Below, in pieces: positions 1,043-62,440 of a stretch of 64,000 nt of DNA. Where the stretch lies: assembly GCF_006345805.1 (NCBI RefSeq), contig NC_043000.1, positions 85,994,001-86,058,000 on the forward strand, written 5' to 3'. The translations under genes and the position numbers were made by a program. Source of the DNA: Octopus sinensis. Lineage: Eukaryota. The notes under the pieces are model-generated. The model made no database searches, was not told where the DNA came from, and worked only from the letters and a program-made list of their open reading frames with translations. How positions within the stretch are numbered: the stretch's first letter is position 1; each line of letters starts with the position of its first letter.

Positions 1043-1401
1043 CATAACAACATATGTGCTTTTCTTTGGACTATTTGCTCCTGTCTCCTTTACCTGTTCT
1101 CTGGACCTTTCCCTTTATCTGGCAAAGAGCCATGCTTGAAATATCATTTCTACTCTTATTTTTCCATCTAAAACTTTCACTGAACATTTATCTAATATAC
1201 TTACTATGTCCAACTGACTTTTGTTATTTTTTCCTGTAGTTTTTGTTCATGAATTTGCTTACACACACACATCTTAAAGAAGTCTAATGAAATATTTACA
1301 AGAAAATAACAGGCAATATAAGAACAATTTGAACAAGAAAATTCCATGTTGAATATTGTGTTAACTTTGATATAAAAATAAATAAAACTGAAAATATTTA
1401 C

Positions 1402-3325
1402 TGATATATTCATATTCTGTATCACTGTCTGTTTCATTATCACCAGAGGACTCTTCTTTTCTATTTGGAAACCCTTCATTTTTATCTATTTTCATTTCTC
1501 TTGATGCTTTCATTCTCTCGACATCCTCATAGTCATGTTCAGTAATATAACTGTATGTTTCCTCAGGGGCAGTATTTAGTGAATCTATAGCTGTGTATGC
1601 AGGTTTTTTATCTTGGACACTTCTTATACTAGCATATAGTGGTTCACTTCCAATTTTTGTCCAGTCACTAACATCATGTATTTTTTCATCTTTAATGTCT
1701 AGAACATCATCATATACTTTATTCGTATTATCAGGTGTTATTGTAGGCTGAGTGTTTAAGATATCGTCATATACTTCATTCATATTAGCAGGTGTTACTT
1801 TAGGCTGATTGTTTAAGATATCGTCATATACTTCATTCATATTAGCAGGTGTTACTTTAGGCTGAGTGTTTAAGATATCGTCATATACTTCACTCATATT
1901 AGCAGGTGTTACTTTAGGCTGAGTGTTTAAGATATCGTCATATACTTCATTCATATTAGCAGGTGTTACTTTAGGCTGAGTGTTTAAGACATCATCATAT
2001 ACTGGTGTTATATCTACATCTGTTGATTTAGTGTTAAAGAATGCCAGTTCAGTATCAGATTTTTGTGTTAAAATATCATGAGATATTTTAGTGTCAGACC
2101 CATTTCTTGTTCCAATGCTGGAATGGGCTACTCCAACATTTGTCTTTGTTATGAAGTTCTCAGACATTTTGCTATCACTATCAGAGATTCCAAGGGATAT
2201 TTTAGTGTCAACTCCTTTTCTTGTTTCAATGCCGGAATGGGCTACTCCAAAATCTGTCTTTGTTATTAAGCTTTCAGACATTTTGCTATCACTATCTGAG
2301 ATTCCAAGGGGTATTTTAGTGTCAACTCCTTTTCTTGTTTCAATGCTGGAATGGGCTACTCCAAAATCTGTCTTTGTTATCAAGCTTTCAGACATTTGGC
2401 TATCACTATCTGAGATTCCAAGGGGTATTTTAGTGTCAACTCCTTTTCTTGTTTCAATGCCAGAATGGGCTACTCCAAAATCTGTCTCTGTTATCAAGCT
2501 TTCAGACATTTGGCTATCACTATCTGAGATTCCAAGGGGTATTTTAGTGTCAACTCCTTTTCTTGTTTCAATGCTGGAATGGGCTACTCCAAAATCTGTC
2601 TTTGTTATCAAGCTTTCAGACATTTGGCTATCACTATCTGAAATTCCAAGGGGTATTTTAGTGTCAAGTCCTTTTCTTGTTCCAATGCTGGAATGGGCTA
2701 CCCCAAAATCTGTCTTTGTTATCAAGTTTTCAGACATTTGACTATCACTATCAGAGATTCCAAGGGGTATTTTAGTGTCAACTCCTTTTCTTGTTTCAAT
2801 GCTGGAATGGGCTACTCCAAAATCTGTCTTTGTTATTAAGCTTTCAGACATTTGGCTATCCCTATCAGAGATTCCAAGGGGTATTTTAGTGTCAGCTCCT
2901 TTTTTTGTTCCAATGCTGGAGTGGGCTACTCCAAAATCTGTCTCTGTTATCAAGCTTTCAGACATTTGGCTATCACTATCTGAGATTCCAAGGGATATTT
3001 TAGTGTCAACCCCTTTTTTTGTTCCAATGCTGGAATGGGCTACTCCAAAATCTGTCTTTGTTATCAAGCTTTCAGACATTTGGCTATCACTATCAGAGAT
3101 TCCAAGGGATATTTTAGTGTCAGCTCCTTTTTTTGTTCCAGTGCTGGCATGGGCTACTCCAAAATCTGTCTTTGTTATTAAATTTTCAGACATTATACTA
3201 TCTCTGTCAGAGATTCCAGGACTCTCTGGTTCACTTATAGTAAAATATTTTGCTTCTGTATTGGAAGAGAGGGTTTCAACTCTAGGCATCTTCTTTGCTC
3301 CATCAACAGTCATAAAAACTGGACC
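1402..3325 (-). CDS. Large internal coding exon (641 codons + 1 nt): Ser/Thr/Asp-rich repeat region and tyrosine-motif cassette of an unidentified signalling/scaffold-like protein
   Basis: 650-aa stop-free frame 1361-3313 extends upstream to an acceptor (tttttag|GGT CCA GTT TTT ATG, phase 0 at 3325). A donor (ATATCA|gtaaat, phase 1) follows 1402. Unique flanks and both repeat arrays stay in frame, and the repeat units contain no indels. Confidence 0.85.
1700..2002 (-). repeat. Coding minisatellite: 5 x 57 bp plus partial unit (19 aa, VYDDILNTQPKVTPANMNE)
   Basis: taggctg recurs at 1801 and 1858 (57-bp period). Six YDD[VI] motifs in the translation. Confidence 0.95.
2078..3217 (-). repeat. 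Coding minisatellite: 10 x 114 bp (38 aa, GISDSDSQMSESLITKTDFGVAHSSIETRKGVDTKIPL)
   Basis: cagacatt recurs at 2161, 2275 and 2389 (114-bp period). Ten units are readable in the translation. Confidence 0.95.
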
Positions 3326-11686: not shown

Positions 11687-12110
11687 GGCAGTGAGCTGGC
11701 AGAAACATTAGCATGCCGGGTGAAATACTTAGCAGTATTTTGTCTGCCGCCACGTTCTGAGTTCAAATTCTGCCAAGGTCGACTTTGCCTTTCATCCTTT
11801 CAGGGTCGATTAAATAAGTACCAGTTATGCACTGGGGTTGATATAATCGACTTAATCCATTTGTCTGTCCTTGTTTGTCCTCTCTGTGTTTAGCCCCTTG
11901 TGGGTAGTAAAGAAATAGGTATTTCATTTGCTGCTATGTCCTGAGTTCAAATTTCACCGAGGTCAACTTTGCCTTTCATCCTTTTGGGGTCGATAAATTA
12001 AGTACCAGTTATGCACTGGGGTCGATGTAATCGACTTAATCCGTTTGTCTGTCCTTGTTTGTCCCCTCTATGTTTAGCCCCTTGTGGGCAATAGAGAAAT
12101 AAGAAGCTAT
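11687..12110 (+). mobile_element. tRNA-derived SINE family B, one full copy plus a tandem 5'-truncated copy
   Basis: A-box-like gagctggcagaaacattagc and B-box-like tgagttcaaattc. The body from ctgagttcaaatt onward is repeated at 11941-12090. Confidence 0.8.
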
Positions 12111-21849: not shown

Positions 21850-22540
21850 ATTAGAAATAGTGAAGGGTCTCAGACTAAGCTTTGAACAAAGGAAATTTAT
21901 TCAAAAGTGCTACTGGAAGTTTGAAAATGCAGTCGCGAGTTTCAAACAGATGCACTTATGCAATTTACCATCACTCAATTTAGAGGTAAGTTTGAAGCAG
22001 AGGAAACTGTTTAGAATGTCTACAAGAAACATTCCAGAAGTCAGCAGACTTTGATGAGCGCAAAGCAAGAAAGTTTACTAGAATCCTGTTGCCAGAGTGC
22101 GAGAAAATTTGTGTGGTAAATGACTCATGAGATAGAAATTTCAAAATCAAGCATCCATCACATTTTGAAGCACTATCACTGGAAAAGTTATATTTCAAGA
22201 ACAGTCTATGATCACACATTTGATTATTATGTGTGGGGCACAGTTGAGCAAGAGACCAACAAAACTCCTTGTAACACCAAAGATGAACCGAAAGCAATGA
22301 TTATGACAGCATTCACCAACTTAAACAAGGAGACCATCCAGAATAGTTGCAGGAGATTCCAAGGTTGTCTGGAGGCTGTGGTTGAAGGCAATGCCGATTT
22401 TATTGAATAAATTTACTCTTTAGTATTTCAAAATATTCTTATGTAATTTTGGTAAATATATTTGTTAAAATAGGATGTCAGTGTTATTTTCTTTTTCCAT
22501 ACTTTAGTTGACAGTTTATTCACCACACCCTGTATATATA
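21850..22540 (+). mobile_element. Internally deleted maT/DD37D-like Tc1/mariner transposon remnant
   Basis: MTHEIEISKSSIHHILK (HTH) and DYYVWGTVEQETNKTPCNTKDE...CRRFQGCLEAVVEGNADFIE. TIR-like caccctgta-ta at the right end. Confidence 0.75.
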
Positions 22541-27950: not shown

Positions 27951-30222
27951 TATATATATTGATGATATCCTGGTGGATGAGAGCATAATGTTGGCAAAGG
28001 AGTAATAAGCCACTTGAAAGTGTTTTGGGCTAACTGCCAAACTGCCGGAGGCAATGGAAGGAGGAGATGCACTGGGACTCAAGCTACAGAGAGATAAGGC
28101 TGGTGCATTGGTGTTTTGGAGAGGAAATGAGACCCCAGAACTGGGCTCCAAGACAAGTAGGTGGGAACTGTTTTCTGTGTGTTGGAAGCTGCTGGGACAC
28201 TACCCGATTGCAGGATGGCTCCAGATGGCATGCAGCTTCATCAAGAGGTGAGCTGAAGGAGTAAGGTGGAGTGATAATGTGGGCGAGAAGACAACTGCCA
28301 TGATGCAAGAAGTCTTGGAGAGAGTGACTGTGGAGGACCCAGTAAAAAGAAACAGGTCTGTGCCCAAACTAAAGAATGGGATCATGTGGTGTGATACCAG
28401 CAGCATAGCAACAGGAGTTGTCCTGGAAATTGGAGGTGTTGTGGTGGAGGATGTGGCCTGGCTCAGGAAGAAGGATGAATGCAACAATATCAATGTGGCG
28501 GAGCTGGATGCCGTGTTGAAGGGGCTGAACCTGGCCCTGAGGTGGGGGCTGCATACCATTGAGGTCCGAACTGATTTGGCCACTGTACTTAGATGAGAGG
28601 GATCAGTGCTCACTGATGAGCGGAAGGTGCAAACCAAAGAGGGTGCAAAGATGCTGATAAAACTCCGTTTGGGAATTTTGGGTGAGCTAGCTGCTGAGTT
28701 TGACCTGAGGCTGAGCGTGGTTTTTGTGCTCTTCGAGAGGAATAGAGTGGACGTCCTGACCAGAATAAAGAAAGCCTGGTTGCAGGTGCCAGAGGATCTG
28801 GAGCAAGGAGTGGCTGCAGTGTGTCAACTGAGTGACTTAGAGCTGAGGAGATTGCATACCATGCATCATATGGGGGTGGACAGAACCCTGTCCTAGCCAG
28901 GAATGTTGACTCTGACATAACCAGATAGAGTGTGCAAAGAGTAGTTGGGAGCTGTGACAGGTGCCAGTCCATTGACCTTGCTCTGAGTGTGCATGAGGCA
29001 GGAAGCATTCCAGTGGAACACAACTGGAAATGACTGGCAGTGGACATGACATGCTACTGGCAGGGGATATAGCTCTTGATGGTCGACTGCTGACTGAGGC
29101 AGTTGGCCATATGGAGGCTGATGGAAATGGGGACCATGGAAGAAATCACAAGAATACTGAGTTATTCCTAGAACGAGGCCCCATGTATTTCACTAGGAGC
29201 TGCTGGGGGAAATGTTCTGCGGCATGTTCTCTGTTTCTTCAGGCCGGCATACTGGCCAAGTGGCAATGGGGTTGTGGAGAGGCATCCTCGCACCATCAAG
29301 ACCATAGCAGAGAGGGTACACATCTTATCCATTCGAGGCTGTTTTTTGGTATAATATGTCACCAAGGTTGGGACAGGCTGAGGAGTCAGTGCCACAGAAG
29401 GCAATATTCAAGTACGAGTGGAGATATCCATGCACTGCATTGCCACAACCTGCAGAAGAGAAAGAGCATGCCTTTGTACAGGTCAGGGAAGAAGTCTGGG
29501 TTAAATCCCCAAATACGTGGTGCACATCACAATGGAGAAAAGGGGACAATAACCTTTGTAAATTTGAAGAACAATGTGTCCATAGATGGCATACCACGTC
29601 ATGTTTTGGATGTGCACAGGATCATCACTGCAATGGAGGATGGAACCAACAGTAATGGACAAGAGGATGAAGCTGGCAGCAACATGCCAGGAACTGAAGT
29701 CAGTCCTGAAGTCCCATGGTGGTCGCAGAGGAAGCAGTGCCCTCCTCACTGGCTGGCTAATTATGAGACAAGTTAAAGCATGTGGCCAGGGTTGAAGAGA
29801 GAGTGTGGGCAGGCTGGTTGAATGATCTTCAGATTAGGGATGTGTGGTGTTATGAGCCAGGCTGTTTTGTAGGGAAGGATCAGAAGTGAGGGAGTATGCA
29901 TGTCCTGTCGGAAGTGGGGTTTGTGGGTCCCACCAGAAAGGCTGTAGTGGGCATGCAGGGTCAGCGAGGCACAAGCAGTCAGTTGGTGGTGGACAGCACA
30001 TGAGAGCAGATATGTTAGACGGTACGGTGGCAGATGGAGCACATAGATGTTGTGAGTGAACCTTCCAGATTGAAACAGAACATGTGGACTTTGTGAGTGA
30101 CTCTTTCCATACTGACAGGTAAGACTACAGCAATTCTCTCTTTGCTTTTGTCTTTTTCCTCCTTCACATCACATTAAACAGATTGGTTAATGACAAATAG
30201 TAAAGAGCACAACTAAAACACA
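27951..30222 (+). mobile_element. Ty3/Gypsy LTR retrotransposon remnant (RT end, RNase H, integrase, probable 3' LTR)
   Basis: YIDDILV (27955), ELFSVC.KL.GHYPIAGWL, WCDTSSIATGVVLE...NINVAELDAVLKGLNLAL.W...TD (RNase H), H..HHMG...C..C (integrase Zn finger), and C-terminal SQR...PPHWLANY. A TG-starting LTR-like segment runs ~29781-30222. Confidence 0.85.
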
Positions 30223-30576: not shown

Positions 30577-30693
30577 CTGTAAACTGCTAGTGATATCATC
30601 CAGTAGATCGCTCCCCTGAGACCCCTCTGAAGAATTTAGTCTTAGGGCTGATGGAGGGTGTGTTGATGATGTTAAACTCATATCACTTTCATA
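30577..30693 (-). CDS. Candidate internal exon YESDMSLTSSTHPPSALRLNSSEGSQGSDLLDDITSSLQ with GC-AG donor
   Basis: Acceptor ttcatttcacag| and donor CAG|gcaag. 117 nt, phase 0-0, only one frame open, locally raised GC and natural residue usage. Confidence 0.55.
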
Positions 30694-32389: not shown

Positions 32390-33432
32390 AGAATAATGTT
32401 TTCATAACTGGATGCTCTTCTTGCTACAAACAACTCTAGGTGTGAAGTCTGTTGTTTTGCCAGTTAGGCAAACTGAAGAAAGCAGAACTACAATGGTAAT
32501 TGTTAAAATCTGTAAGTATAGGACATCCAGTTGAGTTTGATGATAAGCTCCTTGAGGCATTACCTGAAGAAAATCTTGCATTGTCAGTTGCAGAATTGGC
32601 AATAAATCTTAGTTCAAACCATACAATTGTTCATCGTCATCTTCATCAATTTGGAAAGGTTCCTAAACTTGGAAAATCGGTGCCTCATGAATTGTCCCAA
32701 AGCAACCACAAATCCCAAGTTAACATCTGCTCTTCTCTCCATTCTCACAAACTCATTTCACCCTTTTTGGATAGACTTGTGACTGGTGACGAAAAATAGA
32801 TCTTCTATCGAAATGTTAAATATTGTAAACAATGGCTTGGTAAAAGGGAAAAAGCTCAACCACAACCAAGAAGGTAACTTCATGGGAAAAAGGTTCTCTC
32901 TATCTGGTGGTATTGCAAAGGAGTAATTCACTTTGAATTGTTACCACCTAATGCAACAATCAATGCTCAAGTCTACTGTCAGCAATTAGAGCGTTTGAAC
33001 CAAGCTTTGAAGAAAAAAGACCTGCTTTAGTGAATTGAAAAGGAGTGATGTTTCATCAGGACAATGCGCAACTCCACACTGCAAAGATCATATCACAGAA
33101 GATCGAAGAGCTTGGTTGGGAAAAAATTCCTTATCTGCCTTATTCTCCCAACCTTGCTCCTTCAGACTACCATTTTTGTAGCTTACAGAATCATTTGGGG
33201 GACATAACTTTCGCAAGCCAGGGGAAGGTTGAAACTGACATTTCAGAGTTCTTTGCTTTGAAACCAAAGGAGTTTTACATTGATGGGATTAAAAAGCTTG
33301 TAAATAGATGGAAGGAAGTCATAGATAATCAGGGAAAAATAATACATTGATGATTAAATTTCAATTAAATATAACATTTGATCACTTGTTTTCTTTATTC
33401 AAAATTCAGACAGAACTTATGGGATGACCTGA
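32390..33432 (+). mobile_element. Mariner (DD34D) remnant
   Basis: GHPVEFDD..L.AL.EEN...SVAELA...H.TI.RHL...GK..KLGK.VPHEL, LVTGDEK, FHQDNA.LHTA, YSPNLAPSDYH. TIR-like ttatgggatgacctga-ta. Confidence 0.85.
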
Positions 33433-41289: not shown

Positions 41290-41990
41290 CCATCTCTCCT
41301 GATCTTACATTAGTGTTTTTAGGTCTTCAACTTGGCATCCAACATCTTCTGCAAGCTGTTGTATATATGTCTTCCATGGTCTTCTAGCAGCTGTGGTACA
41401 TTGATTTGTTATTCACAGCAACACTTTACCCACAAGTTCTTCTTTACTTCTCCACCAGGGGCCAGCAAACCTCAATCTCCGCTCTTGGATGGTTGATGAG
41501 AAAGTTGGCACATTCCCATATAACCGTTGTTTTGTTGGGTGCTCCCTCCAAGAGATGTTGAGCACCACACGTAACATTCTGGTGTAGGTACCATCCAGCA
41601 TGCACCTGAGTCTCTTGATGGTCCAAGTTGGAGATCCATATACAAGCACAATTTCAACAACTGCTCTGAAGAACTGTCTCTTCAATTTATCTGGTAGGAT
41701 TGACTTCCATATTGTTCTAAGACTATCTATAGCTGCCCATGCCTTAACAACATGAGATTTGATATCTTTTTCAGTGGACACGATATTGCTGCCTAGGTAA
41801 GCAAACTCGTTGATATTTTCCAAGGGCTTCTGTTTGATGGTCCTGATTTCACCTACTGTGTTCAGGGTGGTAAACTCCGTCTTCTTTTCGTTCACATATA
41901 GTCCTATGTTAGTGGCAGCATTTTCCAGGAGATGGAGTAAATGTTCAGTATCTTTTGTGTTATCTGCGAAGAGCACTCTGTCATCAGTGT
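41290..41990 (-). mobile_element. 5'-truncated RTE-type LINE (RT C-terminal half)
   Basis: 187-aa ORF with GL.VN..KTE, F.YLGS.I, V...LVYGS.TW...LDGTYTRMLR..LN.SW, and RRLRFAG. Confidence 0.85.
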
Positions 41991-45211: not shown

Positions 45212-45745
45212 TACAGGGGTTGGACAAAATAATGGAAACATCTGGCATCATATCATCATAATTTTGAAATATCTATAAAACCGTCAAAAGTTTGTTTATT
45301 TTTATGTTTATTGATTTATTATTAGTGTTGTTTAATATTTTTTGCTAAATTTGCAGTTTCTTTTCAGATATCATCAGAAAAAGGTAATTAAAATTCATTG
45401 GACTTTCAAAGAGGTTAAATTGTTGGTGCTTGTATGGCAGCTGCACAAAGCTGGATTTCATGGGAGGGCTGCAATCAGAAAACCACTACTTTCAAAAACA
45501 AATGTTGCAAAGTATTTAGAGTGGAGTAAAAACCTAGAGAATTGGTGCCTAGAGAAATGGAAGAATGTTATTTTCTCGGACAAGTTATCCTTTACTTTAT
45601 TTCCGACCACCAGCCAAGTATACGTGTGGAGACAGCCAAAAGAAGCATTTGACCCAGACTGCCTTCGTCCAACTGTTAAACATGGAGGAGGATCTGTGAT
45701 GATCTAGTGGGCTATATCTTGGAAATCTGCTGGCCCAATTAATTT
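45212..45745 (+). mobile_element. Tc1-like transposon fragment
   Basis: TA-CAGGGGTTGGACAAAATAATGGAAACA TIR; FHGRAAIRKPLLS...W.NVIFSD...TVKHGGGSVMI. Confidence 0.85.
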
Positions 45746-61269: not shown

Positions 61270-62440
61270 AGAAAACAGCTTCTGTCACATGCCAGTGGGG
61301 AAAAGTAGAAGTAGTTGATAGCTTCCATTAGCTAGGTGACCAAGTCAGTAGTGGGAGTGGATGCTCTGAGAGTGTAGCTGCTAGAATAAGAATAGCTTGG
61401 GCAAAGTTCAGAGAGGTCCTATCTTTGCTGGTGACAAAGGGTGTCTTGCTCAGAGTAAAAGGTAGACTGCATGATGCATGTGTGTGAACAGCTATGCTAC
61501 ATGGGCAGTGAAACATGGGGTGTGACTACTGAGGACATGCGTAAGCTTGCAAGGAATGAAGCTAGTATGCTCTGCTAGATGTGTAATGTCAGTGTGCATA
61601 CACGACAGACTGTATGCACACTGAGAGAAAAGTTGGACATAAGAAGCATCAAATGTGGTTGCAAGAGAGATGATTGTGCTGGGATAGTCATGTGCTGTAT
61701 ATGGAAGAGGACAGCTGTGTGAAAAAGTGTCACACACTAGCAGTAGAGGGAACCTGTGGAAGAGGTAGACCCAGGAAAACCTGAGATGAGGTGGTGAAGC
61801 ATGACTTTCAAATATTGGGCCTCACAGAGGCAATGACAAGTGACCAAGACCTTTGGAGATATGCTGTGCTTGAGAAGACCTGGTAAGCCAAGTGAGACTA
61901 TAACTGTGGCCTATGCCAGTGCATCATAACCAGCCCATTTAAGAGTACCCTTCAATTATTGGGCAATAAACTACACTTGCAAAGACTTGTTGAGTCAAAT
62001 AAAGTTATTGTTGTGGCTGATGACAGTACCACCTGATTGGCACTTGTGCTGGTGGCATGTAAAAAAGCACCATTTGAGCGTGGTCGATGCCAGCACTGCC
62101 TGATTGGTCTCATGCTGGTAGCATGTAAAAAACACCATTCAAGTGTGGTCACTGCCAGTGCCGCCTGACTTGTGCATGTGCCAATGGCATGTAAACAGCA
62201 CCATTTGAGTGTGGTCAATGCCAGTACCGCCTGACTGGCACTCATGCTGGTAGCATGTAAAAGCACCCACCACACTCTCAGAATGATTGGTGTTAGGAAG
62301 GGCATCCAGCTATAGAAACTTTGCCAGATCAGATTAGATGCTGGTGCAGCCTTCTGGCTTGCCAGCCCTCAGTCAAACTGTCCAATCCATGCCAGCATGG
62401 AGAGTGGACGTTAAACGACGATGACGATGATGGCGGTGGC
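61270..62440 (+). mobile_element. 5'-truncated RTE (BovB-like) LINE with 3' UTR and (GAT)n tail
   Basis: ARIRIAWAKFRE...LHGSETW...RNEASML..., EGT.GRGRPRKT.DEVV..D...L; the UTR ends ttaaacgacgatgacgatgat. Confidence 0.85.
62055..62270 (+). repeat. 66-bp tandem repeat (3 units plus partial) in the RTE 3' UTR
   Basis: gcatgtaaa starts at 62055, 62121, 62187 and 62253. Confidence 0.85.

Follow-up and report, generated by a model that had tools for sequence, protein, structure and literature searches.

A stretch of 64,000 nucleotides from the Octopus sinensis genome (assembly GCF_006345805.1, contig NC_043000.1, positions 85,994,001 to 86,058,000; hereafter the window, whose first letter is position 1) carries on its minus strand a large coding exon whose 3' third encodes a tyrosine-rich cassette, multiplied in part by a 57-bp coding minisatellite. 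Sequence comparison shows the gene to be orthologous to O. vulgaris CAI9721300.1 and to O. bimaculoides XP_014790228 with its isoforms. The arrangement is lineage-specific but of known kinds, with a coding minisatellite multiplying a short linear motif inside an N-Ank-family scaffold whose linker has been replaced or extended. No paper or annotation was found to describe the cassette, and the proteins concerned are labelled as hypothetical or bear automatic best-match names. We consider it plausible, although unproven, that the cassette acts as a multivalent phosphotyrosine scaffold, its tyrosines being phosphorylated and docking Src homology 2 (SH2) adaptors on a self-associating coiled-coil protein, and assign this reading a probability of roughly 45%.

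Tyrosine is distributed very unevenly along the exon, with 13 residues in the last 205 codons (6.3%) compared with a single one in the other 436 codons (0.2%), a ~30-fold enrichment of the cassette over the rest of the exon; the content downstream of the cassette is 1.7%. Six of these tyrosines, at exon residues 443, 462, 481, 500, 519, and 538, belong to VYDD[VI]L motifs spaced by exactly 19 aa. Tandem Repeats Finder reports the underlying array at 1706-2003 with a period of 57 bp, 5.2 copies, 95% matches, and a score of 526. Recounting in the translation and the Tandem Repeats Finder output thus agree with the initial annotation of this DNA, which had described 13 tyrosines in the last ~205 codons and six VYDD[VI] motifs held at 19-aa spacing by a 57-bp repeat. 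The four central units are ~98% identical and differ by single bases, every such change being non-synonymous, and each 19-aa unit forms a clean tryptic peptide, VTPANMNEVYDDILNTQPK. The array lies far beyond chance and, being head-to-tail, of high identity, and in frame, is a coding minisatellite.

The array is followed by a non-repeated, acidic tail, in which the further tyrosine motifs listed by the initial annotation (EPLYASI, AYTAI, TYSYI, DYEDV, and EYEYI) were all found in the translation. EPLYASI is a single-copy motif outside the 57-bp repeat. Together, YASI and YTAI form a YASI-x9-YTAI pair at exon residues 564-580. Immunoreceptor tyrosine-based activation motifs (ITAMs) are spaced as Yxx[LI]-6 to 8-Yxx[LI], rarely up to 12, so that the x9 pair fits the relaxed range only. 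Pfam searches of the exon and its orthologues revealed no recognizable domain in the cassette; matches to Colipase_C, over a 10-residue stretch, and to YaiO were rejected as spurious and repeat-driven. The cassette is acidic, contains no cysteine, and is probably disordered. A single-sequence AlphaFold2 (AF2) model of the O. bimaculoides orthologue (P0002) displays one short helix per 19-aa unit over the YDD[VI]L core in residues 130-232, the equivalent of 2026-1685, with a predicted local distance difference test score (pLDDT) below 50; such helices would suggest an amphipathic helical propensity, to which we attach little weight. Three further motif readings of the units were dropped by eye: an LC8 'TQT' motif, as the units carry TQP or IQP, an FFAT motif (two phenylalanines in an acidic tract), as Val replaces the required Phe/Tyr, and an acidic dileucine, whose register is unsuitable.

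The exon itself is delimited by an open frame of 641 codons with 0 stops and one further base belonging to a split codon, compared with 56 and 119 stops in the other two frames of the same interval, in a window of 35.6% guanine plus cytosine (GC). It contains no cysteine. Its acceptor, an AG at 3327-3326, is pyrimidine-rich (tttttAG/GG), and its donor is a GT at 1401-1400 (CA/GTAAAT). In two octopus species, the junctions of the annotated proteins fall at precisely these edges (..SSLQ/GPVFM.. at 3325 and ..EYEYI/ITHK.. at 1402), and both splice sites are kept in a genomic contig of a third, more distant octopod (L001, Logan assembly of SRR11869390), which retains 82-85% nucleotide identity through both intron flanks. 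The exon edges proposed by the initial annotation are thus supported indirectly, by gene models in two species and by splice-site conservation in the third. O. bimaculoides XP_014790228.1 is 76% identical to the exon and is named 'dentin sialophosphoprotein-like', with sister isoforms named 'UACA'. An exhaustive phmmer search further returned O. vulgaris CAI9721300.1, a 'hypothetical predicted protein' of 1,319 aa from assembly GCA_951406725.2 with a gene span of 218 kb, whose residues 100-778 are 100% identical to the exon outside both of its repeat arrays. On these sequence comparisons, the large exon is a genuine 1.9-kb coding exon.

One preceding coding exon was located in the window by tblastn, which aligned it at 100% identity with residues 61-99 of CAI9721300.1 and at 86% with residues 1-35 of O. 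bimaculoides. It has an acceptor AG at 30695-30694 and a non-canonical GC donor at 30576-30575 (CAG/gcaaga), and is separated from position 3325 by an intron of 27.25 kb, which is packed with transposon debris. A tblastn search of the 64-kb window yielded none of the exons for residues 1-60 in the O. vulgaris model, for ankyrin repeats (ANK), or for the downstream coiled coil; the exons of the coiled coil and C-terminal domain lie past its left edge. The product of the read-through open reading frame (ORF) 1361..3313 matched no record in an exact look-up.

Unit numbers of both arrays differ between octopod genomes, as counted in assemblies or gene models rather than in genotyped individuals. 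The window harbors six 19-aa tyrosine units and ten 38-aa units of a second, N-terminally located array; the O. vulgaris protein CAI9721300.1 harbors four and twelve, and O. bimaculoides, in both the 2015 and chromosome-level releases, six and seven, the latter counted in isoform XP_014790228.1. For L001 the counts of at least three and at least one are lower bounds, since this is a short-read de Bruijn contig and may be collapsed. The difference between four and six units was checked at the protein level only. As the flanks are 100% identical yet the repeat arrays differ, the window belongs to the O. vulgaris/O. sinensis complex, but its haplotype is not the one behind the CAI9721300.1 model. 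The last unit of CAI9721300.1 is a hybrid (VTPANMNE/VYDDVLDIKDE), which at the sequence level is a signature of in-register loss of two units; reading the resulting 38-aa gap as an unannotated intron was ruled out, as no GT..AG exists at the matching window breakpoints. O. bimaculoides is collinear with the window over 226 residues, and its own units are more diverged from each other. Units 2-5 of the window all resemble O. bimaculoides unit 2, indicating that the equal total of six hides unit turnover, by homogenization or by contraction and re-expansion. Comparison of these sequences thus depicts an array that gains, loses, and homogenizes units between octopod genomes. Of the minisatellite expansion proposed by the initial annotation, the coding minisatellite and its variable unit number (6, 4, 6, and at least 3) stand, whereas a simple upward drift does not, given six units in both O. 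bimaculoides and the window.

Based on the orthologous models, the product would comprise ~1,300 aa, with a short unique N-terminus, the 38-aa repeats, the tyrosine cassette, ~520 aa of coiled coil, and a conserved C-terminal domain. The orthologues run ~520 residues past the cassette as predicted helix/coiled coil, ending in ..TYRLHLISAIQGHIDPDVKNGLFSIIEMRSLEEHC, so that the cassette is an internal linker and not the C-terminus of the protein. C-terminal homology was tested on the O. bimaculoides (P0002) and O. vulgaris (P0007) orthologues. Over the coiled coil and terminal domain (last ~350 aa), phmmer matched them to ANKRD24-like/ankycorbin-like proteins of molluscs (Mytilus, Mercenaria, Aplysia, Solemya, and a chiton), with E = 1e-17 to 1e-10, the strongest ranging from 7.6e-17 to 2e-15. 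Examples are Mytilus XP_052098130 (2e-15 over query residues 505-853) and Aplysia XP_005111831 (5.5e-10). These matches reach the C-terminal end, and vertebrate UACA and ANKRD24 followed at E = 1e-6 to 1e-4. The relatives have in common the terminal pattern ..YR[TL]HL[LI]SA[VI]QGH[MI]DPDV..II E[LM]R... On these similarities, the C-terminal half is truly homologous to the ANKRD24/UACA/RAI14 (ankycorbin) N-Ank family. Accordingly, the search for known domains in the full protein that the initial annotation had suggested identified an ANKRD24/UACA-type coiled coil and C-terminal domain, but no Pfam domain in the exon.

N-Ank proteins are cortical, actin- and membrane-associated scaffolds in which an N-terminal membrane-binding helix and ankyrin repeats precede coiled coils; PMC10274853 describes ankycorbin as a membrane shaper of the N-Ank type. 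Mouse ANKRD24 self-associates via its coiled-coil regions, and its last ~140 aa, the second coiled-coil region's C-terminal half, bind the actin bundler TRIOBP (PMC8859912). The octopus protein shares the long coiled coil and terminal domain of this family. It differs in that neither ankyrin repeats nor an N-terminal amphipathic helix are present in the octopus models or the window, and in that its linker holds two octopod-specific coding minisatellites, absent from decapodiform, other molluscan, and vertebrate members. In Pfam searches, P0020 and P0010 score 1e-39 for the Ank domain, which was not detected in P0001 or P0007; ankyrin repeats are present in the decapodiform homologues P0020 and P0058. 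A tblastn search of the 33 kb of window upstream of 30693 gave no ANK-like exon, but 5' exons may be missing from the octopus gene models; the O. vulgaris gene spans 218 kb. Residues 11-34 of P0007 (SKFLGMSPY..ESTEIKNLF) weakly resemble residues 217-253 of P0020, at the end of its ANK region, which hints at upstream ANK exons missing from the models or at an internal promoter in octopus, but with E = 9 this is not significant. No hydrophobic segment was found (maximum Kyte-Doolittle 19-residue mean 0.5), nor a signal peptide or signal-like N-terminus in the available octopus models. Together with the cytoplasmic relatives, this makes an intracellular, cytoplasmic location of the protein likely, in line with the initial annotation, for which an extracellular or luminal cassette would have been fatal.

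How the cassette might work can be outlined on this basis. Its tyrosines would be substrates of acidophilic or Src-type tyrosine kinases, which presumably favor their sequence contexts, and after phosphorylation SH2 adaptors would dock on them. Adaptors of the Nck/Crk/SLP-76 class would match the YDD[VI] units. YASI and YTAI would suit the Csk/SHP2 class, whose preference we take them to match, or, as a YxxI-x9-YxxI pair of relaxed ITAM-like spacing, tandem SH2 domains of the Syk/Shark type. YEYI would fit SH2 domains of the Src family, whose optimum we assume it to resemble. Actin-regulatory adaptors might in this way be tethered to a self-associating coiled-coil scaffold, with the unit number (four to six) setting the adaptor capacity of each chain; as the protein probably oligomerizes through its coiled coil, valency could be multiplied further. 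By analogy, homology to the TRIOBP-binding end of ANKRD24 would add an independent, indirect link to actin. Peptides of the adaptor ADAP carrying pYDDV and pYDDI pull down Nck1/2, SLP-76, Crk, PLCgamma1, p85, Gads, and RasGAP (PMC2908683), which bears out the earlier description of YDDV as an ADAP adaptor-docking motif.

Several observations speak for constraint on the motif. The 19 units counted in four genomes never vary at Tyr(0) or Leu(+4); they carry V/I at -1, D/E at +1 and +2, and V/I at +3. I/V occupies +3 at 11/13 cassette tyrosines. When only non-redundant sequence is counted, namely units 1 and 6 plus the tail, 7/9 tyrosines have I/L/V at +3 compared with an I/L/V composition of 18.5% (shuffle p = 9e-5), and acidic neighbors of tyrosine are enriched (p = 0.04). 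O. bimaculoides retains all 13 tyrosines, and L001 retains 9/10 of the alignable cassette tyrosines, with no exchange of Tyr to Phe; tyrosine retention has a p of ~0.02, or 0.07 when the lone N-terminal Tyr27 is included. The tail is collinear with O. bimaculoides and keeps every tyrosine there, and 6/7 in L001. The YASI-x9-YTAI pair is unchanged in L001 and reads YASI-x9-YTAL in O. bimaculoides.

Several results weigh against the phosphotyrosine reading. Invariance among the units is in part not independent conservation, as it reflects recent duplication and shared ancestry. The Nei-Gojobori ratio of non-synonymous to synonymous substitution rates (dN/dS) between the window and L001 is ~0.95 over the 171 non-repeat codons that could be aligned (0.55 in the tail after the array and >1 elsewhere, on small counts), and positions -1 to +4 around tyrosine are not conserved above the rest (69% vs 70%, Fisher p = 0.6). 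The array is a young lineage-specific addition, as it is absent from the decapodiform homologues P0020, P0058, and P0028, and no such array was found in other molluscan or vertebrate relatives. The existence of a four-unit version indicates that loss of two units is tolerated. The mean pLDDT of the AF2 model (38) speaks neither for nor against disorder. Since YDD[VI] is promiscuous among SH2 domains, singling out Nck is unjustified. On alignment evidence, we regard the cassette as fast-evolving, with a Tyr-x-x-hydrophobic pattern that is real but under weak constraint.

These results also bear on a less favored possibility, that both arrays are near-neutral products of slippage or unequal crossover in a flexible acidic spacer, the likeness to SH2 motifs being fortuitous and copied from one unit. 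The dN/dS ratio, the lack of excess conservation in the motif cores, the exclusively non-synonymous differences among the central units, and the absence of the array from decapodiform homologues are what such a process would leave behind, as is the free variation of both arrays (at least 1, 7, 10, and 12 of the 38-aa units; at least 3, 4, 6, and 6 of the 19-aa units). Copying from one unit, however, does not account for five more Yxx[IV] motifs that arise independently in the non-repeated tail, nor for the +3 hydrophobic pattern in non-redundant sequence. The ~30-fold tyrosine enrichment, tyrosine changing less than background, and the blocks PLYASIRSVQ and YTAIDSLNTA, identical in the window and L001 across ~30% protein divergence, likewise speak against it, and we hold near-neutrality to be possible while on the unlikely side. 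Should the cassette not be phosphorylated, it would be an ordinary fast-evolving repeat in a disordered linker.

The units could alternatively be non-phosphorylated ligands, either LC3-interacting region (LIR) or ATG8-interacting motif (AIM) types or Yxx-hydrophobic signals for the mu subunits of adaptor protein (AP) complexes, in which case the protein would serve as a multivalent adaptor in autophagy or trafficking. The aromatic-x-x-[ILV] core is present in all six units, with an acidic residue at each of -2, +1, and +2, and the units match what we take to be the extended LIR pattern; coiled-coil proteins with LIRs are common among selective-autophagy receptors. Such receptors share with the octopus units this core, the acidic context, and the coiled coil. 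Tyrosine is the least common LIR aromatic and W/F/Y exchange is normally tolerated, yet no unit or orthologue replaces Tyr by Phe or Trp, the tail motifs YASI, YTAI, and YSYI have no acidic LIR context, and a six-fold tandem LIR array is not a known architecture. Motifs of the AP-mu type act in the tails of membrane proteins, whereas the octopus protein has no membrane segment. From the sequence features, a role of this kind appears rather improbable. A secreted acidic matrix protein, with an extracellular cassette irrelevant to SH2 signaling, is suggested by the 'dentin sialophosphoprotein-like' name of one RefSeq isoform, a label owed to the Ser/Asp-rich 38-aa repeats only; the sister isoforms named UACA, the missing signal peptide and hydrophobic segment in the available models, the cysteine-free exon, and a C-terminal half homologous to cytoplasmic coiled-coil scaffolds render it very improbable. 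Least credible of all is that the exon is a non-gene artefact, i.e., a chance ORF in repetitive DNA or a pseudo-exon. Repeats can hold frames open, and antisense ORFs of 216 and 184 aa indeed cross the second array, but these are by-products of the repeat-kept frame and not genes; the 641 open codons of the exon include ~260 non-repeat codons in an AT-rich genome, its splice sites are conserved in three species, and it lies within the annotated proteins of two.

The cassette can be compared with known multi-tyrosine segments. The YDDV/YDDI sites of ADAP/FYB share the core (E)-V-Y-D-D-[VI] with the octopus units, but the proteins are not homologous, and ADAP has two or three dispersed sites beside hSH3 domains rather than a tandem array. 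The substrate domain of p130Cas (BCAR1) and the tail of nephrin are likewise disordered cytoplasmic multi-tyrosine segments that recruit Crk/Nck when phosphorylated. In contrast to the octopus cassette, p130Cas carries YxxP motifs, which do not stem from a recent minisatellite and lie between SH3 and FAT-like domains, nephrin spans the membrane and has three YDxV sites, and neither has a known copy-number polymorphism. In EPIYA-type segments of a Helicobacter effector, tandem duplication of a tyrosine-motif segment alters the strength of SH2 engagement. This effector is bacterial, acts in host cells, and is unrelated in sequence, and the octopus EPLYASI motif is single-copy.

Multivalent phosphotyrosine/Nck/N-WASP and p130Cas assemblies are reported to phase-separate in a valency-dependent manner (PMC4238058, PMC8791637). 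The initial annotation had extended this principle to repeat number as a 'genetic dial' on actin-signaling condensates, which is speculation. Its stronger form, that alleles with ~3 to 6 YDD[VI]L modules constitute a heritable SH2-valency series tuning the threshold of Nck/Crk-type actin-signaling condensates, strikes us as doubtful at best; if true, the tuning by repeat number known in the bacterial effector would have a germ-line counterpart in a metazoan. Should the tyrosines be phosphorylated docking sites, the four- and six-unit forms would provide a natural allelic series, in which valency steps by a 19-aa module and the rest of the protein stays constant. This would be ready-made material for models of valency-dependent phase separation, which to our knowledge have so far been tested with engineered constructs only. 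A lineage-specific minisatellite would then have added a signaling input to the old cytoskeletal scaffold family of ANKRD24, UACA, and ankycorbin, and this uncharacterized cephalopod gene would gain a first functional handle.

Table 1 Features of the window (positions relative to its first letter; units and codons on the minus strand in reading order)
Feature	Position	Strand	Basis or detail
Large coding exon	1402..3325	-	open frame, orthologue match, exon boundaries same in orthologue models and L001
57-bp coding minisatellite, six in-frame 19-aa units, each [VI]Y[DE][DE][VI]L	1685..2026 (diverged edge units included)	-	Tandem Repeats Finder and unit table
57-bp units	2026-1970, 1969-1913, 1912-1856, 1855-1799, 1798-1742, 1741-1685	-	
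Tyr codons of 57-bp units	1999-1997, 1942-1940, 1885-1883, 1828-1826, 1771-1769, 1714-1712	-	
Non-repeated acidic Tyr-rich tail of exon	1402..1684	-	translation
Tail motif EPLYASI, Tyr codon	1636-1634	-	
Tail motif PAYTAI, Tyr codon	1597-1595	-	
Tail motif ETYSYI, Tyr codons	1555-1553, 1549-1547	-	
Tail motif DYEDV, Tyr codon	1531-1529	-	
Tail motif TEYEYI, Tyr codons	1414-1412, 1408-1406	-	
114-bp coding array, ten 38-aa Ser/Asp-rich units (GISDSDSQMSESLITKTDFGVAHSSIETRKGVDTKIPL), N-terminal to Tyr cassette	2084..3218	-	Tandem Repeats Finder
Preceding coding exon (YESDMSLTSSTHPPSALRLNSSEGSQGSDLLDDITSSLQ)	30577..30693	-	tblastn to CAI9721300.1 and O. bimaculoides
Antisense ORF, 216 aa	2091-2741	+	crosses 114-bp array
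Antisense ORF, 184 aa	2775-3329	+	crosses 114-bp array
184-bp SINE-like element, tandem duplicate	11757-12101		1.9 copies, 89% matches
Mariner-like fragment	22120-22410		by eye
GC-rich island	28000-30000		50% GC vs 35% background; overlapping ORFs
RVT_3 Pfam match (RNase H-like, 'reverse transcriptase-like')	28279-28596		in GC-rich island
DDE_3 (Tc1/mariner-type) remnant	33045-33350		
LINE reverse-transcriptase-like ORF	41413-41976		'FADN' motif (cf. reverse transcriptase FADD); no Pfam match at E<0.001
HTH_Tnp_Tc3_2 remnant	45342-45707		
66-bp array	62020-62267		3.8 copies

The second array of the exon has a period of 114 bp, with 10.0 copies, 93% matches, and a score of 1897 in Tandem Repeats Finder; a sequence comparison of its unit with the 57-bp unit revealed no relation. 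SDSDS stretches in the 38-aa units resemble acidophilic Ser-kinase sites, and the O. bimaculoides isoforms differ solely in the number of 38-aa units 'spliced out'.

Beyond the gene, the window contains remnants of several mobile elements (Table 1), among them a short interspersed nuclear element (SINE)-like tandem duplicate and an ORF resembling the reverse transcriptase of a long interspersed nuclear element (LINE). The GC-rich island is probably a retroelement fragment inside the large intron. Microsatellites of the (AC)n, (AT)n, and (TATG)n types are numerous across the window, as is typical for octopus genomes.

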